DNA of 64,000 nt from Haliotis cracherodii (GCF_022045235.1 NW_027266330.1:16244001-16308000), one strand, 5' to 3'. Shown: positions 1,177 to 38,125, numbered from the stretch's first letter. Numbers and translations: made by a program. Notes: a model not told the origin generated them from the sequence alone.

Positions 1177-4100
1177 CTGTTTTGGACACCTCTGTATTAC
1201 TTTGCACCCTCAAGATGAGCCAACTTATGCACGGACAAAGCACTGCTCCATACGACAAAGCAACACGGGCGTTGTAAAGATGGCGTTTTTCTGTAAATGT
1301 AAACCAGTGAATATTTCGCGGAGCTCTTGGAGAAATATACACCTTAAACATCGTTCTCTTCTGACAACAAACGAGTGAGTGAGTGAGTGAGTGAGTTGGG
1401 TTTAACGCCGCTTTTAACAGTATTCCAGTTATATCACGGCGTGTCAGCTTAATGTGGGAGGAAAGCCCGAAGTGATGCAGGTCTAAGACGTTTACCACTT
1501 GGTGAAACCCACGAGCACGGGTATGGTGCTAACAAACCTAGAAACATAATCGGGGCGAACCTGGATTCGAACCCACAATCATAGGTTTCTGGCGTGTCCA
1601 GGGGACGCAAATCTGCACAGCGAATCGCGGCGCCTTAGACGACTGGGCCGACCGTGCCCCCTCAACTGAGAGTGAAATATATGTTGTGTAATGGGCGTCT
1701 CATAACCGAAACGTGATTTGGTAAACACTATCTAGTATCGCGGAAAGTTCACTTCGTCGTCCACGTTTCTGTTTTCTAAAACATTCCAAACGATCCTTGG
1801 GTTATCGGCAACGTTTCAGATCATTGGTGATATGATAAATCACAGATTTTGAGAGGTCATTATCAGTGATTCTAATTTGCCTTAAATGACTGATTATGTC
1901 AAAACAGAGAAAGTGCGCAGAATGCAAAACTGGATATACATGTTTCGTGTAAAACTACCAACAGACTCGACATCGGTATACTTTAGTATTGAATGTGTGG
2001 AATGTTAAATGGCGGGTTACTCGGGGGATAAACGACGTGTGTTGTGTACTAAATCGACGAAACAAAACAACTACCGGGCTTCCTGATGTACACCACAACG
2101 CTCCGTAGCACTGCATATGTTAAAAGGATGGAACTCTCTATTGCCGCAAATGCCACATATCCTTAAACAAAAAAAATATGAAAATCACATTGCATATTTA
2201 GCATGGAACTTAAAGATCCCCATATCAATATACAGTTACAATGGTGTATCAATACATCACAGCTACATTTAAGCGGTGAAAATGTTATGGATGCATCACA
2301 TTACTTCAACAATATGACCCCTGCACATTTAACGACACGATTTTACCGTTTGCTAGCGGATGACGTCCATAGTCATAACATAGAACGACCCAGTATACGA
2401 AGAATGCAATACTCCAAAGAAATGACACGCAGCTTCGTAATATCCGTATATCGGTCCTCTCTGGAAAGAATAGAAACAAATCTATGAAATCATGATGATC
2501 GCTTTTAAGTATAAAACCATGTGATATTTTTCTTTCAAATCTAAGGGGCGGTCGGATACCTAGTGGTTAAAGCGTTCGCTTGTGACGCCGAAGACCCGGG
2601 TTCGATTCCCGACATGGGTACAATGTGTGAAGCCCATTTCTAGTGCCCCCCGCCGTGATATTGCTGGAATATTGCTAAAAGCGGCGTAAAACCATACTCA
2701 CTCACTCACTCACTCACTCACTCACTCACTTTCAAATCTAAAATGATCATTTAAAGGTCGAAGACCTCGACAACTCATTATTACACGAAAGGAATTCTTT
2801 ATTCAAACTGTGCAACTGGCCAGCCTTAAAACGAGGTAATGATTATACACGAAGTTTCGTTCGGCTCGATTTGTCAGAATGTATTTACAGTTTGTTTAAC
2901 CCTTATGTGTTTTATAATTCACGAGATGACTTCAAATAATTCATTACAAGGCAACAATCGGGAATGAAAACATACCAGGTCGCCTAATCTTTTTCAATCC
3001 ATTAGGGAAGCGTGTCCAGACGAGCGGAATGATGATAAATTGGATGTATACAAACAGGATGCTGGTGAGAAACAGGTGGAAGCTGAATGTTCCTACAACA
3101 GAACCTCCTGATATATGTTACAGTCAATGTGTAAAATCAGTCAATTTGTAAAATGACTGAAATTTTCATTGAGGCAAGTTAAAAACGTCAAAATATATCA
3201 GTCATTTTACAATTATTTTCCCGTCAGATTCACTAAAAGTTATTGAGAAGTTCAAAGGGCTTAAAAGCATCACAGCATATTTTAGTAAAATCCGCGAGTA
3301 CGGATCTGGTGTTAACAAACATTATCAGGGAAAATCTTGATTTTGAACCCACGATTTGTGGCACAGCAGTTCTGCAGAGCGAGTTACAGCGACCAAGAGA
3401 ACTCCCTTAAATAATTAAGATTTTGAATATACAAAATATAAATCAACAATGGAAGTTCATGCTTTGTCATAAATAAACTAGTTTACCTTTTAAATCTAAC
3501 ACTTCACTATGCACAGTACCAACTTCCATATTTCCAAGAAAACAACGGAATTGCAGTTGACCTTCAACAGTGGGAAGATATGTAAGCTGGCTTGTCGTGT
3601 GATATGCACACGAAACAAGGCGAGGTTGTGATTCACTGACGCCATCTTTGATGCTAAGCCAGTGGATTTCATGTGTAGAATTCTTCATCTCCCACTGCCA
3701 GACATGTGCCTTGCTGCCTTCAACAGCTTCACAGTAGACCGTGATTGAAGTCAGGACCTGGTGTATATCATGTACTGGATCTTTTCTGATGGACGTTGTG
3801 GGCTCAACTGGAATGAACGGTTAAATGTCCAGTAGTTTGGTTTGTTGGTTTGTTGTTTTACGCCGCACTCAGCAATATTCCAGCTATATGACGGCGGTCT
3901 GTAAATAATCGAGTCTAGACCAGACAATCCTGTGATTGATATCATGAGAATCGATCCACGCAATTGGGATCGATGACATGCTTCAACCAAGTCAGCGAGC
4001 CTGACCACCCGATCCGGTTAGTCGCCTCGTACGACAAGCATAGTCGCCTTTTACGGCAAGCATGGGCTGCTGAAGACCTTTTCTATCCCGGATGTTCACG

Positions 4101-5361
4101 GGTCTACTGTGTTTGTGTATAAGCCCCGAAATATATGTATGTAAGTTATAGGTAACGTGTCAAAAGCAACTTACCATGAAACTCAATTGCTGGTGAATAC
4201 GGAAGGTTTAAATAAGAAGTATGTCGATAGTTTCTCTTCATCCCAAACACTTCACACTGAATCTTGGTCACTTCTGTACAATTTAATCTGATGGTGGCAG
4301 TAATGATATTTTCATCAATCTTGTAAACATTCTCAACTCGGACTGTAGTATTCGGGACAGCTGCGAGGATTCCGTCTTTACCCATGTGAACTATCTGAGA
4401 TCCATTGTACACAATACTCCGAGTGTACACCTGGTAAAACTGTCCTACGTGACTGCTTCCATTACACGTCACATTGGCAACAGTGCAGGTTGTGACACTG
4501 ACTTTTAAAACTGAAACATAAGCATTTAAGCAAATATACAGTTTTGGTTCGACAGCATTCGGATCATACAAATAATATAATGTTGTTTGTTGGTTTGTTT
4601 GTTGGTAAGGGCCGCATTGAGTAATATTCCAGCTATATGTAGGCGGTCTGTAAATAATCTGGACTTGACAATCCAGTGATTGATATCATGAGCATCAATC
4701 TACGCAATTTGGATGCGATGATATGCATCAGCGAAGTCAGTGAGTCTGACCACCCGATCCCGTTTGTCGCCTCTTACTGAAGATGAATCTGAAGTGAAAG
4801 AGTTTAGTTTTATCTGAGCAGTGTTTCAGTTGAATCGTGTCAGCTGAAGTCAAAGACCAAAGTATTGTCAGTTATGAGTTTGGTGATTGATAAACAAAAC
4901 CAGGGTTCAAAATCGGGACGAATCGAAAATTCGAGCCATGGGATTCAGATCCTGGAACGACTAAGGACTCAATTTGTTGGGCTACCTGCCCCCTCCAGCC
5001 CGAGGAAATTCCAGGTCAGAATACGTCCCGATCAACCTATGCTTGTCGTTAGAAGCGAGCAAATGGATCGAGTGGTCAGACTCGTCGACTTGGTTAACAG
5101 CGTGTCATCGTCCCCGAAGGTGTAGGTCGTTGTTCACAATATGAATCACTAGGTGTTCTGGTGAAGACTCGATTATTTACAGGCCGCCGAGTGCAGTCAG
5201 CTGAGTGCAGCGTTAAACAACAAACAAACAAACCCGCTCCCGAAAAACAAGTCGATAATTCAAGGTTACGATCTGTCTGTGAAAGATAAACAGCTGTTAT
5301 ACATACCTAATGTCATCATGACACAAGACAGCAATGCCTCCAGCTGAGTCTTGTATTTCAT
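1177..5361 (-). CDS. Gene A: 2xIg + multi-pass membrane protein (pentaspan family), 3' end missing from window
   Basis: Exons (minus): 5361-5307 signal MKYKTQLEALLSCVMMTL; 4510-4175 Ig1 (..CTVANVTC..RLNCTEVTKIQCEVFG..IEFH); 3807-3487 Ig2 (..ITVYCEA..VWQWEM..FRCFLG); 3092-2976 TM1 GTFSFHLFLTSILFVYIQFIIIPLVW..RRP; 2460-2347 TM2 ERTDIRILRSCVSFLWSIAFFVYWVVLCYD; 2161-2075 TM3 GYVAFAAIESSILLTYAVLRS; 1290-1177 TM4 EKRHLYNARVALSYGAVLCPCISWLILR. All introns phase 1 and exon-by-exon homologous to genes D and E. The TM5 exon was not found, so it presumably lies left of position 1. Confidence 0.88.
1373..1661 (-). mobile_element. SINE family 2 (tRNA-like head, ~290 bp, (ACTC)n tail)
   Basis: A-box/B-box-like head (GGTTCGAATCC) and TTCCTCCCAC core. 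Other copies at 6787-7040(-), 21714-21950(-), 26388-26666(-), 30216-30499(-), 46374-46653(+), 51177-51454(-), 53862-54105(-); partial copies at ~8395-8570 and ~14530-14668. Confidence 0.85.
2545..2730 (+). mobile_element. SINE family 1 (tRNA-derived, ~170 bp, (ACTC)n tail) with target-site duplication
   Basis: GGGGCGGTCGG..TAGTGGTTAAAGCG..GGTTCGATTCCC head; direct repeat CTTTCAAATCTAA on both flanks. Confidence 0.9.
3836..4104 (-). mobile_element. SINE-like family 3 (~260 bp, Nin/Deu-like core TGCTTGTCGTAAGAGGCGACTAA, (AAAC)n tail)
   Basis: Near-consensus copy; more than 15 copies in the window, including degraded ones at 4585-4780, 5030-5232, 27433-27663, 27833-28058, 28502-28650 and 31460-31659. 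Confidence 0.85.
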
Positions 5362-5727
5362 TGTCCGATCTGTGTTGTTGTAGTATGGCAATCTGTAGAT
5401 CAAATTGCTGACTAACGGTAAGTATCACAAGGTAAAGAACATCTGTTGCCAGTGTAAAATTGATATGTATGTCGCAATGTCAATTCTCTCCCATTCGCAC
5501 ATCAAATACTTGTAAACTAGGACACATCGACATCTATGAAATGTATACTCACTGTTACAGAGAGAGCTAACTTCACATTTTTACAACAAACTATCTATTT
5601 GCACAAGGCATACGCAGTCCCTTGCCAGTTGCATTGCAAGTCGGCGAGGCTATATTCAACAGGCGCGCACTACATGTTGGCCAGACCAGTATATCCTCCG
5701 CTGTAGGTGCACAGTATGGTGATCCCG

Positions 5728-6412
5728 TGTATCCGCGGTATGATTGAATTGTCAGTTATACCACTGTTCTTCTTCTTGTATCCGCGGTACGATTGAATTG
5801 TCAGTTATGCCACCTCGCTCCTTCTTGTATCCGCGGTACGATTGAATTGTCAGTTATGCCACTTCGATCCTTCTTGTATCCGCGGTACGATTGAATTGTC
5901 AGTTATACCACTGTGCCCCTTCTTGTATCCGCGGTACGATTGAATTGTCAGTTATGCCACCTCGCTCCTTCTTGTATCCGCGGTACGATTGAATTGTCAG
6001 TTATACCACTGTGCCCCTTCTTGTATCCGCGGTACGATTGAATTGTCAGTTATACCACTGTGCCCTTCTTGTATCCGCGGTACGATTGAATTGTCAGTTA
6101 TACCACTGTGCCCTTCTTGTATCCGCGGTACGATTGAATTGTCAGTTATACCACTGTGCCCCTTCTTGTATCCGCGGTACGATTGAATTGTCAGTTATAC
6201 CACTGTGCCCTTCTTGTATCCGCGGTACGATTGAATTGTCAGTTATACCACTGTGCCCTTCTTGTATCCGCGGTACGATTGAATTGTCAGTTATACCACT
6301 GTGCCCTTCTTGTATCCGCGGTACGATTGAATTGTCAGTTATACCACTGTTCTTCTTCTTGTATCCGCGGTACGATTGAATTGTCAGTTATACCACTGTG
6401 TTCCTTCTTCTT
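5728..6412. repeat. 48-49 bp minisatellite (~14 copies; TTCTTGTATCCGCGGTACGATTGAATTGTCAGTTATACCACTGTGCCC)
   Basis: Near-identical tandem units are directly visible. They explain ORFs 5989..6476. Confidence 0.95.
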
Positions 6413-6457
6413 CAGGTTTCACGTGTTACTCTCAGCTTCCTATCGTACGTCTGATCA

Positions 6458-6720: not shown

Positions 6721-6786
6721 TAAAAGCGACAAAACCATTTCCATATTCAAATAGAAATATCCAATATACGATTCCGTCTTTATCAT

Positions 6787-7980: not shown

Positions 7981-8661
7981 ATGGATCTGACTTTCTTCCT
8001 CCTGTGTTCACTCCTATCATCAGTAACATGTAAGTATAACATTTAACATAGTACTCAGTGTGTTAGTTCCCTTCAATAGATTATGTTGTGTTTAATGGTT
8101 ACATTTCTGAGACAACAGATCCTACTTTCGGTTTGAACAATTGTTGGCGTATCTAGGTTAAATGTAAAATGTCCTAGCAAACGTGTAGGCCATGGCCTGA
8201 TGTCGGTTAATGTCGGGATAATGTCAGCCTGACCTAATGTATGCATGTCATACATGTGTACCTGTATTGGGGTCATGAGATTGTGATTATACAGCGTTGT
8301 GTACAGTTCTCTTATAACAAAGGGCCACGGGTAAACAAATCGTCTTATGCGCCGCCTTTCGCAGTGCAGACTGCGTCCTCCAGACGTTACAGAAACCGGA
8401 CTGGGTTCGAATCCCGGTTGCCCTGTTAACGTTCTTAGCTTTGTCAGAGCTAGAGCCGTGCTCGTGGGTTTCACCAAAGTGGTAAACGTCTGAGACCTGC
8501 ACCACTGCGGACTTTCCTCCCACATCAAACTGACACGCCGTGATGCAACATAATACTGTTCAAAGCGACGTTTTACTTTACTAACGGAATCGCAAATGTG
8601 TGTAGGTACCGTATTTCTTTTTAAACCTCTAATAAGCTTTCATATTTTCGCGTCATATACA

Positions 8662-8728
<67 letters not shown>

Positions 8729-11700
8729 GAAAGACAGAACTTAAATAAATATATATCCGCATGTATCTAAATGTTCACTGAGAGGAATCGAGCGGTTGTG
8801 TGGCTGCTTTATTTGTGAACGGTGAAGATTCATTCGTCTTTGTAATTTAAGTTCTGTCTTTCCGATATACTTTTCATTGCATCCACTACAAACAATCACA
8901 AGCCATATTTTGTTTTACAGCAAAGTTAGTGTTCTTTGTAACAAATGTCCTTCACCGTTCACAAATAAAGCAGCCACACAACCGCACGATTCCACTCAGT
9001 TAACATTTAGAAACATGTGGAAGCGGCATCTTTTTAGTTTTCCCGCTATATAAGCTAAATTTTGATCATGAACCTACATTGTTTCAAAAAGAGCAACATT
9101 TCATTCATAAATACGCGCATAGGTTAAATGTAAAGGCGAAAATTATTATGTATATAGTATACGCTTACAGTCTATTTGATCATCCGCATAGTTTGAGAGC
9201 AAAATATTTTATGTCTCAAGAAAATGATAAATTCAATATAAATGCATTCTGTCATTTCAGATTGTGCCATAGAGTTGACGGTTACCCCGGAGGCCATTAC
9301 GCTTGGAAATGATGCAAAGCTCGTTATCCGATGTAGCCTTAATTTGCGCTTGTCAAAAACTGACCAGGTGTATTCTGTTATGATGAAGAGAAGAAACACT
9401 GCACTCGTTGTTATATTTACAGACAGTACGACCAATGTGTATGATGAAACTTTGAAAAATGCCACAGTAAACTCATCCCTCTCAACATCGGATGCCTACG
9501 TACAGCTAACGTTTCCAACTGTCACGTGTAATGACAGGGGCAATTACTCCTGCAGTATGGCCGTCAGACAAAATCATAGAAGTCTGAAATTGGGTCCTGT
9601 TGAAGAATATCTGAAGATCACAGGTACATTGTCCATTCCTCTCTATTTCATACAGTTACTGGTAACCCAGTAACCAGCCTATGCAGAGCTGCGTCCCATA
9701 CAGGACAATATCCATTATACGAAGGTTCAAATTCCTGTTTTATCTTTATCATCACCGATAGGCTTACACACAATGTTGATTTGTCGCTTTCCTTGGCACG
9801 CAATGATATAATTTCAGTAGTTAAACCTTATTCCCTTTCTCGGTTTATCAGTTTCGGCTCCCTGCCAACAGTAAGGCACGCAGTTAGGGTCAGTTAGGGT
9901 CAGTAAAGGTCAGTAAAGGTCAGTTAGGTTCAGTTAGGGTCAGTTAAGGTCAGTTAGGGTCAGTTAGCGTCAGAGTCAGTTAGGGTCTGTTAGGGTCAGT
10001 TAGGGTTAGTTAGGGTCTGTTGGCCACGGAGTTATGTAATCTGAGATCTGTAATTCTTCTGACAGCTTGCCTTGGCCGTAACTGTAGCTCTGCGCAAAGA
10101 CAACAGTATAAATGGTACCAGTGCATGTATGTTTGTATTTATCACCTGCTTCAATGAAATATTGAAATAGCATGAAAGCCAATGGGAGAATGGCAACAGT
10201 TTGGTAACTTTTGTTGCATGAATGTAGTTAATTTGTCCCTGGTCGGGAGGTAGCCTGAAGAGCCACAGCTCGGCATCGGCTGGCATTAGCTGGCACGGTA
10301 ACACGGATGCCAGAATACTTTGCCCAAAGTCCTTGGTCGGGATGGGCCACAGTTACAGCCAAGGGTACTGGCAAGCAATACAGATGCCACATTATGTCGC
10401 GGCAAGATCAGTCAGGTCGCAACTGCTCATGTGTTAACTGGCTGCAAACTGAATGGTATTCGTACGTGTAACCTCTTTTATTTAGAAGTTTGAGTACTAA
10501 GTAAGGATAAGATATATGGATGAAAAACTTCTTTATTACAATTAGTAGAGACGTTTCGGTGTAGGTTCTTACCGTAGTCATTTTTCAAGCAATATGACTT
10601 GCTTGATAACGGTGTTAGAACCTACACCGAAACGTTCCTAATTGTATTAAAGAAGTTGTTCATCCATATATCTCATCCTTCCTTATTCTTATGCTGGTGT
10701 CCTTATGAAAGTAGTAGCGATACACAGAATAAATACATGACATTCAACGAATGTATCAATGATAAACTGCACGTTCATTTCAGGTGAATCTTGTCGGTTC
10801 ATCGACACATTCATTTACCCGATGAGTGCTTACAAGATTGGGGATATGGTGAGAATAACGTGTTTCATGCTGGTACAATATGCAACATCCGATTGGCATT
10901 GGTACTTGGCGAATAATGAAACAGTTTACAAATCGGAAGAAGGAGGATGCCAATTTGTTGCAGAGGGAGTAATGAACTGCTCAAGTCTTCTCGAATATGA
11001 AGTTTATATGAGTTCAACCGTTACTTGCCAACTGGGCAATGCGTACAGAACTGTCACAATTGATGTTGAAGATAATGTCGTCGAAGGTATACGTTTTATA
11101 TATTTTTTTAAAACAAAAGACCCGTGAAAATCCGGGGTAGAATAGGTCTTCAGCAACCCATGCTTGCCGTAAAAGGCGACTTTGCTTGTCGTAAGAGGCG
11201 ACTAACGTGATCGGGTGGTCAGGCTCGCTGACTTGGTTGATGCATGTCATCGTATCCCAATTGCGTGGGTCGATGCTCATGATATCAATCACTGGATTGT
11301 CTGGTCCAGACTCGATTATTTACAGACCGCCGTCATATAGCTGGAATATTGCTGAGTGCGGCGTTAAACAATCAACAATTTTAAACAAAAAAATGCATAT
11401 ATATAATTAGTCAAACCTTACTCTCGAAACACAATAACTTCGTTTTTTAAGTGTTAAAAAAATGAGTCTCGTCACCCAATTTTGTGTATTTACAAATTTT
11501 AGACACAGATTCAATGTCCATGAAACCGCAGCAGGTGGATCAAACACTCCCGTCTACACCAGGTGAGCAAATCTCGATTTATCGATAACCTGCTGGATGA
11601 ACTAATTTTTTTTGTATTAAGTATTCCTTCATTTAAGAAATTATGAATTATATACGTTCATCTAGAAATGCGATAATGAGTTAATGTCAGCCTTAAGATA

Positions 11701-13489
11701 ATGATTCAGTCACAATCTATGCACCGAAAGCCTTATTGAATGTTATAACTTTTAAATACTTGTCCTGTTTGATTCAGGTCATGTCACGCACATCAACTAT
11801 ACGACATACATGCTCGTCGGGCTGTGCTCTGTCGTGACTATCGCAACTCTACTCATAGTGCTGAGAACAATAAGTATGTATATTTTAATAAATGTGTATC
11901 CTTTTTCATCTTCTTGTAAGTTGCCCGTTTGGGTACATGGTAAGGTTTGTTTGTATTTGTTTGTTGTTTAACGCCCCACTCAGCAATATTCCAGCTATAT
12001 GACGGCGGTCTGTAAATAATCGAGCCTGGACCAGACAATCCAGTGATTGACATCATGTGCCTCGATCAACGCAATTGGGATCGATGACATGCATAAAACA
12101 AGTCGGCGAGCCTGACCACCCGATCCCCTTTGTCGCCAGTCGTCTTTTACAGGAAGCATTGGTTGCTGAAGTCCCATTCTACCCCGGATCTTCATGGGTC
12201 TAATGGTGTCTGAAACAAACATCAACAGTTACATTGGTTTACAACGGTTTGCATTTCTCAGGTTATTTATACTGTCATGAAATCGTATTTGGACAGCGTC
12301 TTTGTATTATCTACGATAATGTGTAATGTTTATACGATACAGTATCATAAAACCGACCATCGAATGCCCATTTTTAAATTTCAGAATCGCGTGCCACTAG
12401 CATATAATTCGTGCCAAAGTTGGTTTAATAATGTTGGAGCTTTTGATTTATTTACATGTTTCACGTGTATTGTTATGGATAATATTGATTGATTGACTGG
12501 TTTGTTGTTTTACGCCGCACTCAGCAATATTCCAGCTATATGACGGCGGTCTGTAAATAAACGAGTCTGGACCAGACAATCGAGTGATTGATATCATGAG
12601 CATCAATCCACGCAATTGGGATACGATGACATGCTTTAACCAAGTCACCGAGCCTGACCACCCGATCCCGTTAGTCGCCTTTTACTACAAGCATAGTCAC
12701 CTTTTACAGCAAGCATGGGTTGCTGAAGACCTATTCTACCCCGGAATCTTCACGGGTCGTTATTGATAATACCATATTCCAATCGGTATAAGTATATAAC
12801 ACCTTCCAAACTACACTCCTGACAAGGGAGGCACGGGTGACCGAGTCTCTGTCACAATTCGCTGAGCAGAGACGCGTGGTTTGGGGGTGTTAGAATTCCT
12901 TATTATGCTTCTACTTTCTACAATAACACTTTACGCATGCTACATGTTAACATTTCACAAGTCATATTTCTAATTGGCATTTAGTATTGGGATGGTTTCC
13001 AGATAAAATGTCTGTGTCCAACACTTTTACAACATGGCCACTAGCATAAACCGCCGGGCAAATGGAACTGTACCTTGCAAATTGGATGTGACAACCGTTA
13101 CCAAAACGGGACTAGGTTGAAAACAGTCGCCGAAACACTGCAAATGTAAGGTCCGAAAACGTCATCGAATAACCATTTCATGTTTGTTTTATTATTAGCC
13201 TCTACCACAATGTACATTCTTTCTTTTGCCCGGCAGTAAGTTACTTTATAAGAGCTATACTAGCTGTTGCAGAAACAATAACATGTGTATTTAACAGTTG
13301 GTATTTTTTCATATAGGCAATAGAAGACAATGTTCCAGTGAAGATAACCACATCGTCAAAGAGGAGGAGGTGCAACTGTCGAAACGTCACATTACCAACC
13401 TTCATTTATTTACCAAGGAGGAGGATACAATAGATATATGTGAAACGCTCCCTTTAACTTCTTCCGAAAAGAGTGACCATATTTTATGA
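7981..13489 (+). CDS. Gene B: single-pass type I receptor, V-like Ig + second Ig + stalk + TM + Tyr-free tail (~347 aa)
   Basis: Exons: 7981-8029 signal MDLTFFLLCSLLSSVT; 9261-9623 V-like Ig (IRCSL..VYSVMMK..VTCNDRGNYSCSMAVR); 10784-11086 Ig2 (VRITCF..DWHWY..VTCQLG); 11503-11562 stalk; 11778-11873 TM (MLVGLCSVVTIATLLIVL-RT); 13317-13489 tail SNRRQCSS..SDHIL*. Canonical GT-AG, all phase 1, total length 1044 nt in frame. Confidence 0.85.
8728..9020. repeat. Inverted-repeat (MITE-like) element in intron 1 of gene B
   Basis: 8757-8830 is the reverse complement of 8950-9020 (~70 bp, few mismatches). A further inverted pair lies at 8728-8745 / 8845-8862, next to a (TA)n(CA)n microsatellite. Confidence 0.75.
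9880..10020. repeat. 10-bp tandem repeat (CAGTTAGGGT)n in an intron of gene B
   Basis: About 14 imperfect copies, each containing a TTAGGG-like hexamer. Confidence 0.85.
10503..10680. mobile_element. Palindromic Penelope-like (PLE) terminal remnant
   Basis: Roughly 85-bp inverted arms around 10590-10600, each carrying a CTTGA(T)AAcggtg...caccGAAAcgt motif resembling PLE 3' pLTR / hammerhead-type ends. Confidence 0.55.
11119..11377 (+). mobile_element. SINE-like family 3 copy
   Basis: Starts GACCCGTGAA..CCGGGGTAGAATAGG; full length. Confidence 0.85.
11945..12200 (-). mobile_element. SINE-like family 3 copy (variant subfamily)
   Basis: Shares diagnostic variants and a 5' flank with 22515-22760. 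Confidence 0.85.
12492..12758 (-). mobile_element. SINE-like family 3 copy
   Basis: Near-consensus; shares variants with 20738-21008. Confidence 0.85.
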
Positions 13490-22200: not shown

Positions 22201-22934
22201 AACTTTGATTCCGTCATCTCAATGCTTCCATCCTGAAATAAAATAGCCACGGAACTCCCTCCTTTCTTAAGCATTATCGAGTACACCGTGTCCGTCCTCG
22301 AGAGCACCATATCAAGGTGGCATCGTATAGTCACGGGTCGAGAACTGCCTGGACGAATTATCTTCGGCTTGATATCTAGGATGATCTGGCACCCTATAAA
22401 AGCATAAAACAATATGCAATCAGAATGAATTGACACGGTATAACTAACAACAAACGTAATGTATCACAAGCCACTATTTACATAAAAGTGAAATACGCCA
22501 ACATATATTTTTCGCTCGATTGTTGTTAAACACCGCACCCAACAATATTCCAGCTATCTTACGGCAAGCTGTAAATAATCAAGTCTGGACCAGACAATCC
22601 AGTGATTGACATCATGTGCGTCGATCAACGCAATTGGGATCGATGACATGCATCAACCAAGTCAGCGAGCCTGACCACCCGATCCCCTTTGTCGCTAGTC
22701 GTCTTTTACAGCAAGCATTGGTTGCTGAAGTCCCATTCTACCCCGGATCTTCACGGGTCTAATGGTGTCTGAAACAAACATCGACGATAACATTGATAAA
22801 CATTGAATATTGTAAGCATTGTTTTAGCGTTTGAAATAATCTATAGCTATCGACTTAGCTTTTTTGGAAAACGTACCAGCGAAACCCCACTCAGCGAGTA
22901 CGACGTAGAGTATTGTCCGAAAAAAGTACTCCAT
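16220..22934 (-). CDS. Gene C: single-pass type I receptor, V-like Ig + second Ig + S/T-rich stalk + TM + Tyr-motif tail (~400 aa); paralogue of B
   Basis: Exons (minus): 22934-22877 signal MEYFFRTILYVVLAEWGFA; 22393-22031 V-like Ig (363 nt, same length as in B; IRCHL..VYSIMLK..VTCMDKGEYSCSMAVR..LGPV); 19451-19140 Ig2 (VNITCSV..DWSWF..IKCLNG); 18980-18930 and 17752-17678 stalk; 17149-17057 TM (GLMVLYVLVSAFAVILVFTLLHLFL); 16470-16220 tail DRKCKC..AAYLHP..EPIYEEIE*. All phase 1. Confidence 0.88.
17278..17444 (-). mobile_element. SINE family 1 copy
   Basis: High identity to the family; TGGGATCAGTT direct repeat on the flanks. Confidence 0.88.
17978..18140 (-). mobile_element. SINE family 1 copy
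   Basis: High identity to the family. Confidence 0.88.
20480..20646 (-). mobile_element. SINE family 1 copy
   Basis: Consensus-like; TATCTTTGTTTA direct repeat on the flanks. Confidence 0.9.
20738..21008 (-). mobile_element. SINE-like family 3 copy
   Basis: Full length. Confidence 0.85.
21714..21950 (-). mobile_element. SINE family 2 copy (degraded)
   Basis: Homologous to 1373-1661. Confidence 0.75.
22515..22760 (-). mobile_element. SINE-like family 3 copy (variant subfamily)
   Basis: Homologous to 11945-12200. Confidence 0.85.
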
Positions 22935-26906: not shown

Positions 26907-29900
26907 ATGGAAATGACACGATTTGCAACGGGTTTGACAGCGCTGTATACAATATGTAAGTATGGACAAAATAAGACTAAACCGATAATGTGTCAACACA
27001 ATTACGTCTCAAATATTTCAGACATTTTTGTATGTTTTGTTGTTTAATGGAATGGTTCTGAAATTTCAGTTTGCACAAGTCACCTTACCGCTGGAATCCC
27101 CGTGCGTACCACTGTGGAGTGTCAGGCGTCTAAATATATCAATAGCTATCAGAAGATTTTCTCCATTTCTATTGAAATATTCAACGTGACAGTCGTTCAG
27201 TTGGAAAAAAAGAAAGACCCCGTAGTTGTTCCCAACGACAAATACACCATAAGCAACATTACCGGACAACTAACAGACAATGATGTGTACATCAGAGGAA
27301 CGACTTTCCTAGAGTGTGAACTCGCGAGTACTATATATTGTGTTTTGTATGGCTACTCAGATTCTGCTTACACGCATGTACGATTCAAGCCGGATACTGA
27401 ATTTGATGGTAAGACTATTATGCATCCTGTAAACGTGAAGATCCGGGTCAGAACAGGTCTTTGGCAGCTCATATTTGTCATAACGAAGCCGGGTGGTCAA
27501 GCTCGCTGACTTACATTCTAAAAAGTAATCTTCCATCAGATTCTGGTTAGAATTGGTCTTCAGCAACCCATTCCCTGGATAGCCTGGTCCAGACTCGTTT
27601 ACAAACCGCCGAAATATAGCTTGAATATTGCTGAGTGCGGCGTTAAATAACAAACAAATAAACAAATATATTGTGTTCACCTGTTAATCATTGTTTATAC
27701 ACAGAATTATTTTATAATCTCACATAATAAAATTCCATGTCCAATATTATCATAAATTGAGAAAATAAGAATTTATATGGAATTTAATTTCTGTTTGTTT
27801 ATGTGTTATTGTAATCATTCACTTGCCATTTTACCCCGTGAAGATGGGGTTGGAGTTAGCCTTCAGCAAACCATGCTTGTGATTAGTGGCGAAGGGTTGG
27901 TCAGGCTCACTGACTTGGTTGTCGTATCCAAATTGCGTAGGTCGATGGTCACGATGTCAATCATTGGATTATCTGGTCCAGACTCGGTTATTTCGGTTAC
28001 TCGTCGTCATTATAGGTGGAATGTTGCCGACTGTGTCGTTAAACATCAAACAAACAATTATCCATTTCAGTTACCTGGGAAAATGTCTCTATTACACGAA
28101 GAAGGGTTCTATTCAATGACAGCAGATACATCACACTTCTGACATGCGCATTAGAGGCTGGATCCAGAACAACGGAGATGTGGTGGCAATCTCGTTCGTC
28201 TGACGAGACTTTTTTAAAACTTGATCCACGTTCATATACTGTCACGAGAAGAGTCGGACCTGGTTGCCATGTGCACGTGCTCAGTGAACTAAGACAGGAG
28301 GCAGGCGAAGGGCAAACGCAGGTCAAGTGCATGTTTGGAGCATTTGAAGTGGGATCAGTCGCAGTTGGAGAAACTAACCAAGGTACCAACTATGCCTCAA
28401 CTTGCATCACGTTACCTCCAACTTGTTTTCAAAACCAGTAACAAATAGACCTACTGCATCAGATATATATATATACACACACATACACACCCATATATAT
28501 GGACCCGTGAAGGTCCGGGGTAGAATAGGCCTTCAGCAACCCATGCTTGCCGTAAAAGGTGACTAACGGGATCGGGTGGTCAGGTTCGCTGATTTGGTTG
28601 ATGCACGTCATCGATCCCAATTGCGTGGATCGATGCTCATGATTTCAATCATATTAGCATGTCAGCTTGATGCGGGAAGAAAGCAAGACTCACTCTGTTA
28701 CAGAAAATGTATTGACTGTTATGTCGTGTATGAGCTGATCATGTTATATTGAAAAAAAGGAATATACAGTCAAATACCGTTGTGTCAAACTTACGGTTGT
28801 CTCAAAGTAAATTCTTGGTCCCTGCGTATTCCTTTTTTATTCATCATTTTTGGTTGTGTCGAACTAGTGATAACCCGAAGTATTTACGCATGTCCCTTCA
28901 ACTTCGACACAACGATGTCTGACTGTACATGAATTCCTTCATGTTTCCGTTACACGATACACACTTGCATTCATGCTTACTGAAATAAAATGATTTACTT
29001 TACAGAACCTGACAATATACTTAGTTCCCATCTTTTCCTATCGACGGGGTTCTTGGTGTACCCACATTTTGTCATCCTGCCACCTTTCTGTGACTTTCTA
29101 CTGATGAAAAACATCATTCCGCAAAATTTCCGAGATCCAAGTAAGACGTTTTATTTCTTTGTGACACCATGCAAGTATTCACATTGACCGTGACTAAGTG
29201 AGTGAGGTAATATTTCACTCTCTATCCAACTAACGACGATAACATTTGATATATGTGCTAAAATTCTATTGTGAATAGCAACAGCCTTATATACGTACAA
29301 TTAAGTTCAATGGCGGAAAGTCTACAGATCTGCTAGTTGAAATTGTAATCTTTTAGGCACCATCAAACATGGGTGTATTCTTTTTTTGCCAGGCAGATTA
29401 GTTGTATTCCGTGTAAAGTTTTGATATCTGCAGAGTACATGTTAGGATGTGTCCCTTGGGAGTATTGACTATATGTCCATTTTTGGAGACAACCAGGTTG
29501 CAAATTTTAGACTGTAGTGCTGATATTTCTGTCGGAAAGTGAAGTGAAATCACCTATAAAACTACGTATTGCGATAATGGATTGTGAGTGTTTTTTTACT
29601 CCATGAACTCACATCACAATATTTCAGAAACAACGAAAAGTAGAAAGCGCAGAGCCTGGATTTCATTAATCACCGGCATTATCTTTCTTGTATGGTGGAT
29701 AATTGTGATTCAAGGTGCTCACACATCAGGTAATTGCATTTTGAAGTAAATTATTCTTTACGTAAGTTGTATAATGTTTTCTTTATCCAAGAGTTGGAGT
29801 CGGAGTTGACAACACTGATAAAATTTGATTTCCTGTTTTATTGAGACGATGTGGTGACAGGACACTTTCTGTAATCGATATATCATACATTGATTGAACT

Positions 29901-31070
29901 ATGTTTAATATTTCAATTTATTTATTTCCAGGTTACGTTTGTTTTTTGGTTATGGAATCATTGTTCTTCATTCTTTATGCTGTTGTCCGACTGCTGCCTG
30001 AAAGGTTCGAGAAAGACGGTAAGTAATAAGAATTACCGGTAATACACGCGTGTATGGGTTACTGACAAATCTTCACATATTGTGTTTTTTATACCTCTTC
30101 GCAGTTGTTAGGTAATACCATTGCGGCATTCTCATGGTATCATATGTAAAATATTACCTTATACCCCACTACCGAATTAAGGGATCAACAAGTCAGGTCC
30201 GGGTTATTAATATTAGTGAGTGAGTGAGCGAGTTGGATTTAACGCTGCTTTTAACAGTATTCCAGTTATATCGCGGCGTGTCAGCTTAATGTGGGAGGAA
30301 AGCCCGAAGTGATGCAGGTCTCAGACGTTTACCACTTCGGTGAAACCCACGAGCACTGGTATGGTGCTGACAAACCTAGAAACATAATCGGGGCGAACCG
30401 GTATTCGAACCCACAATCATAGGTTTCTGGCGTGCCCAAGGGACGCAACTCTGCACAGCGAATCGCGGCGCCTTAGACGACTGGGCCACCCGTGCCCCCG
30501 TTATTAATATTAACTGACACATCGTAAATAGAACAAAGCATCCTACTTCTTGTTTAATCTGTTATTATTTGTAAATGATCATGATCTGGTTCTGCATTTG
30601 ACTATCATTGTAGGTGAAAGACTTCTCTACAACTGTAGAGTATCACTATCCTGCGGAGCTGTCATAACTCCGGGTATCTGTTGGGTGATGATCAGAACTC
30701 AGATGCAACTAGCGTTCTCCATACAGGGTATTATATCTGTTACAGCTGTCATAACTCCGGGTATCTGTTGGGTGATGATCAGAACTCAGATGCAACTAGA
30801 GTTCTCCATACAGGGTATTATATCCAGAGACTATCATAAAGTCGTAGTCTGGACTAAATACATATGATTATTGTATTAAAATATTATATATAACTGTAAT
30901 ACAATATTAACACATGTGAACATATTCCTACGCCATTTATGTGCATATACTGAAACTTATATGTTATGTTTGCAGAATGTGTCTGGTTGGTGGTGACAGC
31001 CATTTCACTCATCACCTTCGTTTCTGTTTCCAACAAGAGAGAATGGAAGTCATGGGACAAGCGCAGTTGA
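26907..31070 (+). CDS. Gene D: 2xIg + five-TM membrane protein (~410 aa), complete
   Basis: Exons: 26907-26955 signal MEMTRFATGLTALYTI; 27070-27408 Ig1 (VECQ..FLECELASTIYCVLYG..TEFD); 28071-28382 Ig2 (LLTCAL..MWWQ..VKCMFG); 29006-29140 TM1 SSHLFLSTGFLVYPHFVILPPF; 29628-29729 TM2 RRAWISLITGIIFLVWWIIVI; 29932-30018 TM3 GYVCFLVMESLFFILYAVVR; 30614-30727 TM4 ERLLYNCRVSLSCGAVITPGICWVMIR; 30976-31070 TM5 + tail ECVWLVVTAISLITFVSVSNKREWKSWDKRS*. Total 1233 nt, in frame, all phase 1. Confidence 0.9.
28765..28928. mobile_element. Tc1/pogo-type MITE
   Basis: TA-CAGTCAAA...CGTTGTGTC and GACACAACG...TCTGACTG-TA terminal inverted repeats. Confidence 0.65.
30216..30499 (-). mobile_element. SINE family 2 copy with TSD
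   Basis: GTTATTAATATTA duplicated on both sides. Confidence 0.9.
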
Positions 31071-32671: not shown

Positions 32672-32759
32672 GTAGATTCATGTATGCTGCTGTGGTCAAG
32701 ACAGATGGTTGACAGCAGCAACACATGTACGGCCTGATGCGTCACTACACGACAGAAAT

Positions 32760-33400: not shown

Positions 33401-33845
33401 GTATAATAACGCCTTTCTTTTTTTCTTTGCCAACGTGAAGCGACTGAAGTATCTAGTTGTTTTAATCGCAAAGGATGCGCTACGCCATTTTGTTTTAATT
33501 TCTATGTTTACAAGGAGCGCGTTCAAGGAAACAACAATGATAAAATCTTGACCTGAGATTTATTGGGTTATTTTCGATATAGGTCAACAGAACATTTTGT
33601 GCACTTCACATGTCGTTCGTTGTCAGCTGTTTTGAAAAAGCTTAGCGGAACATCGTGCAATGCCATTGAACGATATATAGTTTATTCAACCAAAAATGAA
33701 TAATACATTCAGGTACTTCACATGTCATTCACAAGTAGATCCTTTTATTAAAGTCCGTGAGAATATCTAAATGCACTCCTTTCATAAATGATCAGTCGGA
33801 TGTGTTCATGTGTTATGGCAACACGCAAGAACAACTTCATGCACG

Positions 33846-36800
33846 TCAATAACATTTTTCCGGTACTTCCCAATACTTTCCCTCTCGGCTCTTTGAGACG
33901 CAGACGAATCCAGTAAAGCATCCGATCGTCACCAACCAGAAAAAGACCTCTGAAATGTTATGTACACGAGACTGTGTAATGTCAACATATTTCTTTAGAT
34001 GATCTGATCATTATTTTTCCAAAATAATATTAATGTATCACTTTATGAAACAATGCTTTCCAAACGAAATTTGATTTTTTTGTTATCTAACGCCACAATC
34101 AGCAATATTCCAGTTATATGACGGCGGGCTGTAAATAATCGAGTCTGGACCAGACAACCCAGTGATTGACACAATGAGCATCGATCCTCGCAATTGGGAT
34201 ACGATGACATTCATCAACCAAGTCAGCGCCTTAACACCCGATCCCGTTAGTCGCCTCTGACGACAAACATATAGTCGCCTTTTACGGCAAGCATGGGTTG
34301 CTGAAGACCTATGGTGAACAGATGAAGCAAATAAATGTTTACCTACCAAGTCCTATGATGCTAGTGCCTCCATAACACCTGATCATAATCCAGCATATAG
34401 AGGGCGTCATTGTCGCCCCATAGGAAGTGGCTACTCTGATATTGTACAAATATCTCTGACCTGTGAACATGAAATGTATGAGTTAGAAAGGTCTTTGTGT
34501 CCACCTAAAAGCACTCTCCCTGCACACTGTCACCGTTGCGCTGCTTAAATAAAACACCCACAAATATTGACATTGTTATCACATTGTATTGTTTCATCAC
34601 TTGTGATACACAAAGGGTTGGGTCCTTTTTCCCGAACGGACATACAAGGTAAAAGATGTTATTATTTGCAAAAGTCTGTCAAAAAGGATGAGTGTGCATA
34701 AAATTAAATATTTGGGAAATAGTACAACGTTTCGTATACAAAGCCACAATGAACAATAAAGATCTTACGTTTTTTTTCGAAGCGCCTGGACAAGTTTGCA
34801 ATGAACCTCGTGAGGGTGTAGCCAAGTACGAAGACAAATTCGATCACAGCATACATGAAATAACCTGTGTACATGAATACACATGATTAGAAATAGGGAC
34901 AACAAAATCTAACTACAATAATTTGATAATTGAAAACTAATAATTTATATCGACCTGATAGTTTTCTGATGAAACAAAATAACTAACCTAATGATCTGAG
35001 AAGATGGTCTCTTAGAATTATGATCCACCATATGAAGAACGCGAGGCCCACAAGGAATGACATTGCCGTACGAAATCTGCGCATACACAATCGCTCTGAA
35101 AATATGAATAATAACGATTCTTACCTGAAACAAAATCATCATACAAAAATTTGTATGAACACCGATTGGACATGAAGAACAATGACAAGATATTTCAATT
35201 CTTAGTGCATTTTCAAGAACAGGGTACCTTATTTTAAATATATTCTCACCTGGTTTTCGAAATGTTACTTTGTCTCCGAACAGAGCAAATACACATGGCA
35301 AGATGATGAAATGCATGTACACTAACATGCTCGATAGAAACAGATGGGTACTGTGATTATCTGGAAATAGAAACTTAACCGGTGCATATCTAAATAATTC
35401 ATCTATCTTATTACTGGATGATAATGCTTGATTGAGCTATATCTCTTGATAATCGAGATATTAAGAACATCCACACGAACATATGCCCAACATATTCTTA
35501 GAGCCATTGAAATGAAACATGAAAGATATATGAAACATGAAAGATATATATGAAACGTCAACGCGCAAGAATAGCCAATCTCGATTATCGGACGAAACAG
35601 TTTGCATTAGTTGGCAATATAGCGATGAAAATAAAATGAATGGATCACTGGAAATCAGTAATGACACCAGGTGTTCGCGAAAAGGGTAAGTAACATCAAA
35701 ATGTTAACCCGATTTAGTCCTACACTGCAACTTTTCACAGTCATTAATGTCATTATAAATTCTTATAATGTATGTACTAGTCAGTGCATTATAACATTTC
35801 ATAGTTAGTAAGATAAAAAAATGACAAACCCCTGCCAGTTCTGATTGTGAGAGAAGTTGACCTTGACCTATCGTTTTCAGCGATACACTTCAGAGATATG
35901 TCCCCATGTTCTGCGGGCACGTGAACATATTTACTGACAGCATGGTAGGAACACTCTGATAGAGTCACAGTGCTTGCTTGAGGGCTGTCACCAGGAACGG
36001 GTTGGAAGCCTGTGATATCTGAGTGACTGATCATCCATTGCAGTCTAGTTCTGTTAACTCCAAACTGCGCAGAACATATGAACAGCACGACATCACCAAC
36101 GCCGTATGTCTCCTTCACAGGCGTCTGAGTGATTGAAACATTGCTTGTAGCAACTACAACATAAAAATACAAATAGCTATCATTCATTAGGCATTCATAA
36201 AAACAGTACCGTGGATTGCTGAACATATTATTTCAACTCATAACTGCTGCGTTGCATCTGTAGAGAAATATACAACATGCATAGATGGTGCTTCACCACA
36301 GAGTGATGCGTATACCAGATTTTGATCACTTTCACTTAAACATAAGCATATTATAAATAAAAGCAACAAAGCCAGTCAATAACCATAATAAATCTCTGCT
36401 AAGAGAAGAGTCCACTGTACGATATGGACCAAATCTTAAGCACATTTGATTATATACCAGATGTCCGCAAGAAGGTGAGCGTGAAATTGTTTTGAGCAAA
36501 GGTAGCATAATGCTCTTTGAAATCTTCGTGGAAATATTGCGTGATTGCACTGATCAATTCATTAATCAATGATACTTGTGAACATTTGTACCATTTAACA
36601 TCTAACAACATGACAGACAGACATGTACACGTACATTGTGGTCATTCGTCATGACAATGTTCACATAAATTGAATGCGGAAAGAATGAGTTAACTGTGTC
36701 CTACCATTAAATTCCAGCTGCGGCGTGATTGTCAAGTTAGTGTAGGATGTTGGGTTGTATACCATTCCAAATGATTTACATCGAATATGTTGGACATCGC

Positions 36801-38125
36801 TGCATTTGATGTTAAGGCTTGCTCTGAGAATTCCAACTTCATCGGTTATATGTCCAAAAGGACTGGAAACAATTCCACTGGTAACTTGAACATCGACCAT
36901 GTCGTTACTAAAGAACATCAACTGTGTCGTGTTGATAAATAGGTTCATTGAGAAAAGTCTAGAAAGTTGTTCACATTTACACTCGACGTTTACGTTTATG
37001 GCAGGTGCGGTTTTCGCCAGCAACACTGGAAAAAATAGAAGATATATGGCATGGCTAAACATTTTAAAGTTTAACTTCACCTCTGGAAAATATGCTCAGG
37101 GAAATAGTCCCAAAATAGTCCCAAGTGCACCAAGAAACTGTGTACATTTTTTTCTCATAACATTTGCTCATTATAATACAATGCAGGTTATAAAGTTTGA
37201 CATGATATTCCGTTGGTAAATACGAAGGTCGGAATCATTAAAAAGGTCAAGCAGCGTTTAACTTGATGTTTATGCCTTAGACGGGGGCGGTGGTGTAGCC
37301 TAATTGTTACTGTGTTATCTCGTCATGGCGAAGGCCCTGATTCGATTTACAGCATGGGTACAACGTGTGAAGAAAAACCTCCAACCCCTTTCCATATCCA
37401 ATAGAAAAGTCTGCTCAAAGCAGAGTCAATTGTACTATTCCGACTATAGCATGAGCACATGTTTATGGATCACTATTAAATAGTGCTGACACCAGGTGAA
37501 ACCCACCGTGATAAACGGCAGCTTTAACTAGCAAATGAAAGCGACAAAACCCTTTCCATATTCATAAGAATTCTCTGCTTAACACATTTCAATTGAATGA
37601 TATTCAATTTACATTCTGCTACTATTAACCAACTAGTATACCTTGCTCATCATTATTATCACAGCTGGTAGAATAGACCTATGCTTGCCGTAAAAAGCAA
37701 CTATGCTTGTCGTAAATGGCGACTAAAGGGATCGGGTCGTCAGGCTCGCTGACTTGGTTGATGCATGTCATCGATCCCAATTGCGTGGATCGATGCTCAT
37801 GATATTAATCACTGGATTGTCTGGTCCAGACTCGATTATTTACAGACCGCCTGTCATATAGCAGGAATATTGCTAAGGGCGCCGTTAAACAACCAGCCAA
37901 CCAACCAAAATGTTTAAGGCACATTTTAATTCTCTCTTACAGAATGGGTTATGTGTCCTTAAAATCATTGGAGTTATTGTAGCAACTATGCACTTATCTA
38001 AATCAAGGTATTGATATTTCAATGCAATTTAGAGTTTGAATAAACTATTTACATTGTAGATAAGACCAACGATCAAGTTAAACACACTCACGGCAAACAG
38101 CTACACACTTGTAAAATGCCGCCAT
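33846..38125 (-). CDS. Gene E: 2xIg + five-TM membrane protein (~403 aa), complete; paralogue of A and D
   Basis: Exons (minus): 38125-38092 signal MAAFYKCVAVC(LLLAKTAPA); 37025-36705 Ig1 (VECK..IKCSDVQHIRCKSFG..LEFN); 36153-35830 Ig2 (LFICSA..LQWMI..LKCIAE); 35360-35250 TM1 STHLFLSSMLVYMHFIILPCVF; 35095-34988 TM2 RFRTAMSFLVGLAFFIWWIIILR; 34864-34769 TM3 GYFMYAVIEFVFVLGYTLTR; 34460-34347 TM4 QRYLYNIRVATSYGATMTPSICWIMIR; 33949-33846 TM5 + tail EVFFWLVTIGCFTGFVCVSKSREGKYWEVPEKCY*. Total 1212 nt, in frame, all phase 1. Confidence 0.9.
34085..34311 (-). mobile_element. SINE-like family 3 copy
   Basis: Homology to the family. Confidence 0.8.
37665..37908 (+). mobile_element. SINE-like family 3 copy
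   Basis: Homology to the family. Confidence 0.8.

Follow-up and report, generated by a model that had tools for sequence, protein, structure and literature searches.

A 64,000-nucleotide stretch of the Haliotis cracherodii genome (C67:16244001-16308000, hereafter the window) holds five spliced membrane-protein genes of the immunoglobulin superfamily (IgSF), which lie in the order A(-), B(+), C(-), D(+) and E(-). Genes A, D and E encode predicted five-helix proteins, here called pentaspans, while B and C encode single-pass proteins. We give an even chance to the reading that these genes form an abalone-restricted, fast-evolving IgSF surface cluster of two kinds, in which variable ectodomains would serve in recognition, next to a conserved helix bundle, and in which signalling would fall to one of the two single-pass types, the C-type.

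Gene models in the window

The ATGs of A to E lie at 5361-, 7981+, 22934-, 26907+ and 38125-, and each begins a short hydrophobic signal-peptide exon that ends in a phase-1 GT donor (5/5). The exons that follow the signal exons were located from their resemblance to paralogues and orthologues together with splice signals; searches were done exon by exon, with the full-length comparisons being made with database proteins. All 24 internal exons modelled in A to E are of phase 1-1, have lengths divisible by 3, are stop-free and follow an AG acceptor, with the donor being GT in all but one, the TM4 exon of gene A, which has a GC donor at its end at 1177. A preliminary description of this DNA had reported five spliced IgSF genes in the same order and with the same ATGs, and our exon models agree with it. 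Its statement that the genes keep open frames holds for 24/24 internal exons, and its statement that they keep canonical splice sites holds apart from the single GC donor. Also upheld are the two divergent pairs that it recognized, A/B (ATGs 2.6 kb apart) and C/D (4.0 kb apart), each joining a gene for two Ig domains and several membrane spans to one for two Ig domains and a single span, as well as its third pentaspan gene, E, for which we obtain a model with two Ig domains and five TM helices and find spliced transcript contigs.

The pentaspan genes A, D and E each encode a signal peptide, two Ig domains, five TM helices and a short, basic tail, with one exon per domain or helix, all in phase 1. 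Gene A (minus strand) starts with a signal-peptide exon at 5307-5361 (ATG 5361, phase-1 GT donor), followed by exons for Ig1 (4175-4510, 336 nt), Ig2 (3487-3807, 321 nt), TM1 (2976-3092, 117 nt), TM2 (2347-2460, 114 nt), TM3 (2075-2161, 87 nt) and TM4 (1177-1290, 114 nt); its last exon, for TM5, lies just to the left of the window at C67:16243825-16243923. A 42-bp minisatellite at 116-947 falls inside the intron between the TM4 and TM5 exons. Gene D (plus strand) consists of a signal-peptide exon at 26907-26955 (ATG 26907) and exons for Ig1 (27070-27408, 339 nt), Ig2 (28071-28382, 312 nt), TM1 (29006-29140, 135 nt), TM2 (29628-29729, 102 nt), TM3 (29932-30018, 87 nt), TM4 (30614-30727, 114 nt) and TM5 (30976-31070), the last of which ends in ...SNKREWKSWDKRS and the stop codon. 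An 87-bp tandem repeat at 30657-30824 duplicates the 3' end and the donor of the TM4 exon of this gene. Both A and D agree exon by exon with full-length RefSeq models of Haliotis asinina.

The splicing of gene E (minus strand), the only one of the five genes for which transcript support was examined, is proven by transcript contigs from four runs, which follow the path 37026-36705, 36153-35830, 35360-35250, ..., 34458- and 33949-33557, and whose lengths agree with exon lengths of 111+108+96+114. Its first exon (38092-38149) has its ATG at 38149 in the RefSeq model, with the ATG of the preliminary description, 38125, being in the same frame. The Ig1 (36705-37025, 321 nt) and Ig2 (35830-36153, 324 nt) exons are covered by spliced RNA contigs and the TM1 exon (35250-35360, 111 nt) by one such contig. 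The TM2 exon (34988-35095, 108 nt) fits the contig sums in length and its predicted peptide is the same as in the H. cracherodii RefSeq protein XP_071086068 (P0017). Then come the TM3 exon (34769-34864, 96 nt), which bears the conserved Glu of the family, the TM4 exon (34347-34460, 114 nt) and a last exon (33557-33949) encoding TM5 and a tail ending in ...SKSREGKYWEVPEKCY, with the stop at 33846-33848 and a 3'UTR reaching to at least 33557. The exons are 99-100% identical to XP_071086068, TM2 and TM3 having no separate exon-level match among those listed. Candidate exons of this gene were concatenated locally only as a check of frame continuity.

The single-pass genes B and C each have a signal exon and one hydrophobic exon for the membrane span, with H = 2.5 for B and 2.8 for C. 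Gene B (plus strand) comprises a signal-peptide exon at 7981-8029 (ATG 7981) and exons for a V-like Ig1 (9261-9623, 363 nt), Ig2 (10784-11086, 303 nt) and the TM helix (11778-11873, 96 nt). A putative cytoplasmic exon of B at 13317-13489, which is free of Tyr, is purely a prediction based on a phase-1 acceptor and on a basic, Cys-containing start like the DRKCKC of gene C; a search for downstream exons by conservation between B and its paralogue B2 returned repeats only. Gene C (minus strand) comprises a signal-peptide exon at 22877-22934 (ATG 22934), a V-like Ig1 exon (22031-22393, 363 nt), an Ig2 exon (19140-19451, 312 nt), a TM exon (17057-17149, 93 nt), which is 81% identical to that of its paralogue C2, and a cytoplasmic exon (16220-16470) that starts with DRKCKC, contains AAYLHP and ends in a C-terminal EPIYEEIE followed by the stop. 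These models are supported, at the level of sequence, by the Ig1 exons of B and C, which are 38-40% identical, and by paralogues on contig C40, where 4/5 exons of C2 and the two Ig exons of B2 were recovered. An orthologue search with exon-sized B and C queries, whose size restricts how long a candidate can be, gave one match, P0016, an unspliced Logan contig of a C2 orthologue.

We interpret B and C as probable V + C2 single-pass receptors, which belong to two old subtypes, with their V-set status resting on sub-threshold scores. The Ig2 domain of C matches Pfam C2-set_2 (PF08205) above threshold (23.0-23.4 bits, cut-off 21), and that of B aligns with it while having no Pfam match of its own. 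The Ig1 domains of B and C score 22.1 and 18.4 bits against the Pfam V-set family, under the cut-off of 26, and a profile of them finds weak matches to VH and JAM-A in the PDB (E 1e-4 to 1e-2). The tails of C and C2 are only 37% identical, yet both keep (A/T)AYLHP and EP(I/V)Y(E/D)EI(E/D)-COOH, so that the C-type tail has two conserved Tyr motifs, 23 residues apart. In C these are EAAYLHP, with P at +3, and EPIYEEI, with P at -2; in C2 they are ETAYLHP and EPVYDEI. Tyr motifs are confined to this tail and are of the YxxP and YEEI types. Neither ITIM ([ILVS]xYxx[ILV]) nor ITSM (TxYxx[VI]) was found in the C and C2 tails or in the predicted tail of B.

The pentaspan architecture and its likeness to CD47

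We predict that the pentaspans have five helices in an N-out/C-in topology. The hydropathy profile has K/R-rich loops 1-2 and 3-4 and a K/R-rich tail, which fits this orientation, with TM4 being weakly hydrophobic, and an AlphaFold2 model of the E orthologue built from 8 sequences contains five helices at a mean pLDDT of 56; as this model is poor and TM4 weakly hydrophobic, a four-helix topology is also possible. The alignment of the family has an invariant Glu in TM3 and another at the start of TM5, along with the motifs FxIWW and PxxCW. An internal repeat relating TM2 to TM4 and TM3 to TM5 is suggested by profile comparisons (P = 0.004 and 0.013) over 19-23 columns. A model with a mean pLDDT of 56 gives the fold searches little power: Foldseek placed V-C proteins at the top for the pentaspan model, among them butyrophilins (BTN), PD-L1 and Fab chains, which fit two tandem Ig domains; the VIA wide search gave generic helix bundles only, with Z about 10; and the Atlas fold search gave no usable match.

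The preliminary description had called the pentaspans CD47-like. What stands of this is the architecture, as predicted, of Ig, five TM helices and a short tail; what falls is kinship in sequence or fold, and the pentaspans have two Ig domains as against one in CD47. An hmmscan of P0001, P0002, P0003 and P0007 (E<=1) found no match to the Pfam CD47 families V-set_CD47 (PF08204) and CD47 (PF04549), and V-set_CD47 is also absent from the matches of the Ig1 exons in the window. Likewise, CD47 was not recovered when a profile of the pentaspan alignment was searched against all PDB sequences (E<=10), and neither the top Foldseek matches nor the top VIA matches listed for the pentaspan model include it. 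Since there is no Pfam, PDB-profile or fold match, the likeness to CD47 is architectural, and the design appears to resemble CD47 by convergence, without detectable descent. CD47 of vertebrates and poxviruses shares with the pentaspans the N-terminal Ig, five helices, a short cytoplasmic tail and the N-out/C-in topology, which is predicted for the latter. In contrast, the pentaspans have TM motifs of their own (Glu in TM3 and TM5, FxIWW and PxxCW), and we find their family in Haliotis only. To our knowledge, CD47 in vertebrates and poxviruses is the only other case of Ig fused with a five-helix bundle.

The likenesses of these genes to other receptor systems are of a similarly limited kind. 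B and C share with SIRPalpha and other ITIM receptors an Ig ectodomain on a single membrane pass, and the C-type has two Tyr motifs; however, the SIRPalpha ectodomain is V-C1-C1, as against V + C2 in B and C, and the AYLHP (YxxP) and EPIYEEIE-COOH (YEEI) motifs of the C-type differ from the ITIM of SIRPalpha-type receptors, with no sequence relation being detected. The comparison with Tyr-signalling SIRPalpha in the preliminary description is upheld for the C-type tail as regards Tyr motifs, though these are not ITIMs, and it does not extend to B, the predicted tail of which is Tyr-free. The B7, butyrophilin, nectin and JAM proteins share with the abalone proteins an ectodomain of one V-like and one C2-like domain, but the likeness goes no further than the generic Ig fold, without orthology, and the pentaspans have a five-helix bundle in place of a single TM helix. 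The Hydractinia Alr and Biomphalaria clusters resemble the abalone cluster in being lineage-specific, strongly diverged, clustered membrane IgSF genes with cytoplasmic Tyr motifs; the abalone family is small (4 + 4 genes) and no homology with either is shown. We know of no multi-span members in these two systems.

Distribution, divergence and the second locus

The pentaspan family is, in the searches made, limited to Haliotis. It consists of 'uncharacterized proteins' of H. asinina, H. rubra, H. rufescens and H. cracherodii, as found by an all-against-all HMMER comparison of 1.84 billion representatives and by word-based searches, and no Pfam family was matched; the profile behind this restriction was that of the exon which evolves fastest, and the other searches were limited by words, so that distant relatives in other gastropods could have escaped. 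The preliminary description knew of no account of such proteins in molluscs; our literature search likewise finds no paper on the pentaspan family, in line with the annotation as 'uncharacterized protein'. The A-, E- and D-like proteins of H. asinina have consecutive accessions on one 83-Mb chromosome, which is a hint regarding synteny.

Within the family, comparison of orthologues shows that the TM bundle changes far more slowly than the pentaspan ectodomains. The exons for TM2 and TM4 are the best conserved. Between H. cracherodii and H. rubra, gene E is 61% identical in Ig1, 69% in Ig2 and 85% in the TM region, and between the sister species H. cracherodii and H. rufescens the pentaspan gene F (see below) is 62% identical in Ig1, 91% in Ig2 and 90% in the TM region. 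The listed differences between the gene E RNA contigs and the window point the same way, with 7 non-synonymous to 2 synonymous changes in the Ig exons and 1 to 4 in the TM exons, in a sample of 14 sites that mixes species and alleles.

In the 1.18-Gb genome of H. cracherodii there are 4 pentaspan genes and 4 Ig1 exons of the B/C type, all of which fall in two loci. The second locus, on the 0.6-Mb contig C40, has C2 and B2 head-to-head with each other and the fourth pentaspan gene, F, about 20 kb downstream, so that each locus has a B-type gene, a C-type gene and at least one pentaspan. The pentaspan tree is {A,E}|{D,F}, and the closest single-pass pairs are B-B2 and C-C2, a pattern that speaks neither for nor against the old inverted duplication earlier envisaged. 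The Ig1 domains are 53-57% identical within the single-pass subtypes (B-B2 and C-C2), and D and F are about 30% identical. The Ig1 profiles of the pentaspan and single-pass families are unrelated, and their Ig2 profiles give a weak alignment over the full domain (P = 0.009). Because the Ig1 profiles are unrelated, the two families are not recent tandem copies of each other. Both loci probably go back to a single ancestral arrangement, so that the linkage of the gene types counts as about one independent observation.

A functional coupling of the pentaspans with the single-pass genes is suggested by this linkage only, and two rival readings stand beside our preferred one. In the first, there is no coupling: the genes would form a lineage-specific tandem IgSF cluster, the ancestral neighbourhood of which was copied once, with adjacency being historical and the genes acting independently. 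We consider this possible though clearly less probable than our preferred reading. It is in keeping with the paralogy of the two loci, since the closest pairs D-F, B-B2 and C-C2 bring co-location near to a single event, with the differing gene order and orientation at the two loci, with the phase-1 exon design, which is common in IgSF genes, and with the weak alignment of the Ig2 profiles. It sits less well with the unrelated Ig1 profiles and with the joint retention of the three gene types at each locus in the face of very deep divergence.

In the second, A-B and C-D would be cognate ligand-receptor or co-receptor modules, expressed from shared promoters and functioning in self-recognition or allorecognition after the manner of CD47 and SIRPalpha, which we regard as unlikely. 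The CD47-type layout of Ig, five TM helices and short tail, the divergent arrangement with its 2.6- and 4.0-kb spacings, the presence of both families at both loci, the fast-evolving Ig1 domains and the Tyr motifs of the C-type tail would all suit such modules. Against them stand the lack of any detected sequence or fold link to CD47, motifs that are not ITIM, and a predicted B tail free of Tyr. Moreover, the head-to-head partners on C40 are C2 and B2 rather than a pentaspan and a single-pass gene, and neither E nor F belongs to a head-to-head pair. The pairing proposed in the preliminary description is therefore not kept at the C40 locus, the only paralogous one, and what recurs is the linkage of the three gene types. 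Nor do its bidirectional promoters fare well: the ATG spacings are wide for the classical type, and a comparison of the A/B and C/D intergenic regions for a promoter or duplication signal found only interspersed repeats in common. A complex prediction for Ig1 of A with Ig1 of B gave an ipSAE of 0.00, a neutral result that speaks neither way.

Possible functions of the cluster

In our preferred reading of a fast-evolving surface cluster of two kinds, the variable ectodomains would recognise changing ligands, which may be self, non-self, pathogen or gamete, while the conserved five-helix bundle would give lateral association or anchoring. The C-type would provide phosphotyrosine signalling, with the B-type being apparently Tyr-free. 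Among SH2 domains, those of the Crk/Abl/Nck type bind YxxP and those of the Src type bind YEEI; the C-type sites, once phosphorylated, would dock SH2 domains of these two types, respectively.

A dedicated role of the fast-evolving Ig ectodomains in sperm-egg recognition seems to us improbable, and the most doubtful of the readings considered here. Abalone sperm-egg recognition by lysin and VERL drives rapid protein evolution, and abalone fertilization proteins are a classic case of rapid divergence; the restriction of the family to the genus and the 62% identity of F Ig1 between sister species, as against about 90% for the rest of the protein, would be in keeping with such a role. However, nothing ties the genes to gonad or gametes, and immune receptors have the same evolutionary pattern.

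A bolder proposal, which we likewise hold to be a long shot, is that abalones independently evolved a system like CD47/SIRP or like those of allorecognition, wherein the linked V-C2 receptors would read, in trans or in cis, markers of the Ig-Ig-5TM design that diversify rapidly, with the C-type signalling via YxxP/YEEI and the B-type acting as a non-signalling partner. If this were true, the locus would control self/non-self discrimination or compatibility with pathogens or gametes.

A genus-restricted family that has the CD47 design yet is unrelated to CD47 would offer a clean example of convergence in receptor architecture. The fast-changing N-terminal Ig domain, along with linkage to receptors with Tyr motifs, makes this small set (4 + 4 genes) a candidate surface-recognition system in a mollusc, which may have roles in immunity in the endangered black abalone or in species or gamete compatibility.

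Gene structures and gene E transcripts

The Ig1 and Ig2 exons of genes A, D and E, which code for the five-helix (pentaspan) proteins, form three paralogous sets with 22-30% identity in the ORF listing and ORF-versus-ORF comparison, which also unite the single-pass genes B and C as one paralogous pair (Ig1 38-40% identical). Each of the five ATGs named in the preliminary description starts a short hydrophobic exon closing with a phase-1 GT donor, and the Ig exons of the three pentaspan genes share one end column, with G|GT. Exon placement drew on splice signals and orthologous proteins. The 24 internal exons are all stop-free and have lengths that are multiples of three, phase 1-1 and AG acceptors. 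GT donors are found in 23 of the 24, the sole exception being a GC donor at the end of the A TM4 exon (1177; CAG|GCGAGT), a candidate GC-AG intron at what had been taken as the left border of the cluster. Exon sizes are kept among paralogues: in A, D and E, respectively, Ig1 measures 336, 339 and 321 nt, Ig2 321, 312 and 324 nt and TM4 114 nt throughout, and Ig1 of both B and C measures 363 nt. The A and D models are backed by full-length H. asinina RefSeq proteins matching them exon by exon, with the A TM5 exon (ending in SHDREGKDWEKED and a stop) located 77-175 bp to the left of the window. The B and C models are predictions from splice phase and conservation with paralogues, the B cytoplasmic exon being only predicted. 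Window sequences entered searches as individual exons, and database proteins served for full-length analyses. The earlier account of five IgSF genes was right in detail, and its interpretation is supported in part.

Gene E is transcribed and spliced as modelled, since contigs from four runs of four studies (Logan contigs, with the type 'RNA?' assigned by guess) lack the introns, with junctions exactly where predicted. One contig of 1558 nt comprises 37026-36705, 36153-35830, 429 unlisted nt and 33949-33557, and the gene E TM exon lengths (111+108+96+114 = 429) fill its unlisted part; in another, 36025-35830 is spliced to 35360-35250. The gene equals RefSeq XP_071086068, which shows 99-100% identity to its exons among the exon-level matches listed.

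Several repeats were observed in and around these genes. A 42-bp minisatellite of about 20 copies (116-947) lies in the last intron of gene A, between the TM4 and TM5 exons. An 87-bp tandem duplication (30657-30824; 1.9 copies, 98% identical) copies the 3' end of the D TM4 exon with its GT donor, and this second donor, if used, would add 29 in-frame residues. A SINE-like interspersed repeat with TAGTCGCCTCGTACGACAAGCA is very abundant in the window, filling introns and spacers of the cluster (e.g. 3940-4119, 11195-11407, 20717-21037, 34086-34352 and 38399-38900), and dominates the read depth and the false 'joints' in RNA contigs.

The pentaspan proteins and their likeness to CD47

In an alignment of eight full-length pentaspan members, the signal peptide is followed by two beta domains with Cys residues and then by five hydrophobic segments. 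Invariant positions include Glu residues in TM3 and at the beginning of TM5, as well as FxIWW in TM2 and PxxCW in TM4. Before TM4, which is itself weakly hydrophobic, comes a conserved cytoplasmic stretch, RxLYNxRVA. Loops 1-2 and 3-4 are K/R-rich and the tail is basic, features that fit a predicted N-out, C-in topology. The TM2 and TM4 exons resemble each other (R.A.S…I.W.I), as do those of TM3 and TM5, both in gene E (34347-35095) and in the alignment; profile comparisons gave P = 0.004 and 0.013, respectively, over 19-23 columns. An internal hairpin duplication is possible, if weakly supported.

The AlphaFold2 model of the pentaspan protein, though of poor quality (mean pLDDT 56), has two beta sandwiches and five helices, its top Foldseek hits being two-domain V-C proteins, namely butyrophilins, PD-L1, Fab and TCR chains. 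The label 'CD47-like' given to these genes earlier holds for this architecture, with no kinship detected. In Pfam at E<=1 no CD47 family was matched, the matches being one weak generic Ig_3 (E 0.0026, below its cut-off) and others at chance level; CD47 was likewise absent among the listed matches of the family profile to all PDB sequences at E<=10. A wide VIA search recovered generic helix bundles only, with Z of about 10, under the tool's stated noise for helical models, and the ESM Atlas had no usable match. Given that neither sequence nor fold searches link the two, the likeness to CD47 is architectural, and was reached without detectable homology.

The single-pass proteins and a second locus

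The Ig1 domains of B and C have sub-threshold Pfam V-set matches and weak PDB-profile matches to VH and JAM-A; Ig2 of C lies above the Pfam C2-set_2 cut-off, and a single strongly hydrophobic exon is present in both genes. The C tail reads DRKCKC…EAAYLHP…EPIYEEIE followed by a stop, and that of its paralogue C2 is 37% identical, retaining DRKCKC, ETAYLHP and a terminal EPVYDEID. By established SH2 specificities, we take these motifs to be YxxP (Crk/Abl/Nck-type) and YEEI (Src-type) sites rather than ITIMs. Comparison of Ig1 profiles found no relation between the pentaspan and B/C families; their Ig2 profiles gave a weak whole-domain alignment (P = 0.009).

A search of the whole assembly (1.18 Gb) recovered only four pentaspan genes, A, D, E and a fourth, F, on contig C40 (C40:91819-98784, + strand; equal to XP_071078678), and no more than four B/C-type Ig1 exons, those of B and C in the window and two on C40: the C-type C2 (68750-69112, - strand) and the B-type B2 (70838-71200, + strand). 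The C40 locus (66464-98784) consists of C2(-) and B2(+) head to head, then transposon ORFs (piggyBac-like and others), and F(+) about 20 kb downstream. Ig1 identity is 53% for B-B2, 57% for C-C2 and 38% for B-C, and the pentaspan tree splits {D,F} from {A,E} with support 99/98.

At each of the two loci a B-type gene and a C-type gene occur together with one or more pentaspans. The loci resemble copies of a single ancestral block, and therefore their linkage counts as roughly one independent observation. The preliminary description had proposed a ligand-receptor module built from head-to-head pairs of pentaspan and single-pass genes. The linkage of these gene types recurs at both loci, but the head-to-head unit is not conserved, as C2 faces B2 on C40, and the paralogous locus leaves the idea of cognate head-to-head partners unsupported. 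The tree is compatible with an ancient inverted duplication (A-B | C-D), as proposed there, without demonstrating it.

Interspersed repeats are all that the A-B spacer, the C-D spacer and the other upstream ones have in common. The A-B spacer carries a 49/145-bp minisatellite of 14 copies (5728-6409). Elsewhere in the window, a large exon of an unrelated neighbour gene (50372-51178, +) codes for a segment of a Major Facilitator Superfamily transporter (Pfam MFS_1, E = 8e-16), and an ORF at 60091-62995 (+) belongs to a non-LTR retrotransposon and includes a reverse transcriptase (Pfam RVT_1). At about 63650-63790 there is a run of 144 N, an assembly gap or masked sequence.

Distribution and evolutionary rates

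The IgSF cluster is real and, within the searches made, undescribed and restricted to abalones. An Ig1 profile run with HMMER against 1.84 billion cluster representatives matched 7 proteins at E<=0.001, of which four are family-sized (387-409 aa), all Haliotis 'uncharacterized proteins', and the other three longer; word-based searches brought in more proteins, again solely from Haliotis. No description of the pentaspan family was found in the literature searched.

Between H. cracherodii and H. rubra or H. asinina, gene E retains 61% identity in Ig1, 69% in Ig2 and 85% in the TM region, and against H. rufescens 95, 94 and 98%. For F against H. rufescens the values are 62, 91 and 90%, the F differences lying in patches within Ig1. 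For gene E, the listed mismatches of RNA contigs to the window comprise 7 non-synonymous and 2 synonymous changes in the Ig exons and 1 and 4, respectively, in the TM exons, a small sample that mixes species and allele differences. Such a pattern is consistent with a membrane module under constraint that bears a variable recognition surface. The favoured reading is of a fast-evolving gene set for surface recognition, in which the C-type proteins would provide phosphotyrosine signalling; coupling between the pentaspan and single-pass families is plausible but unproven.
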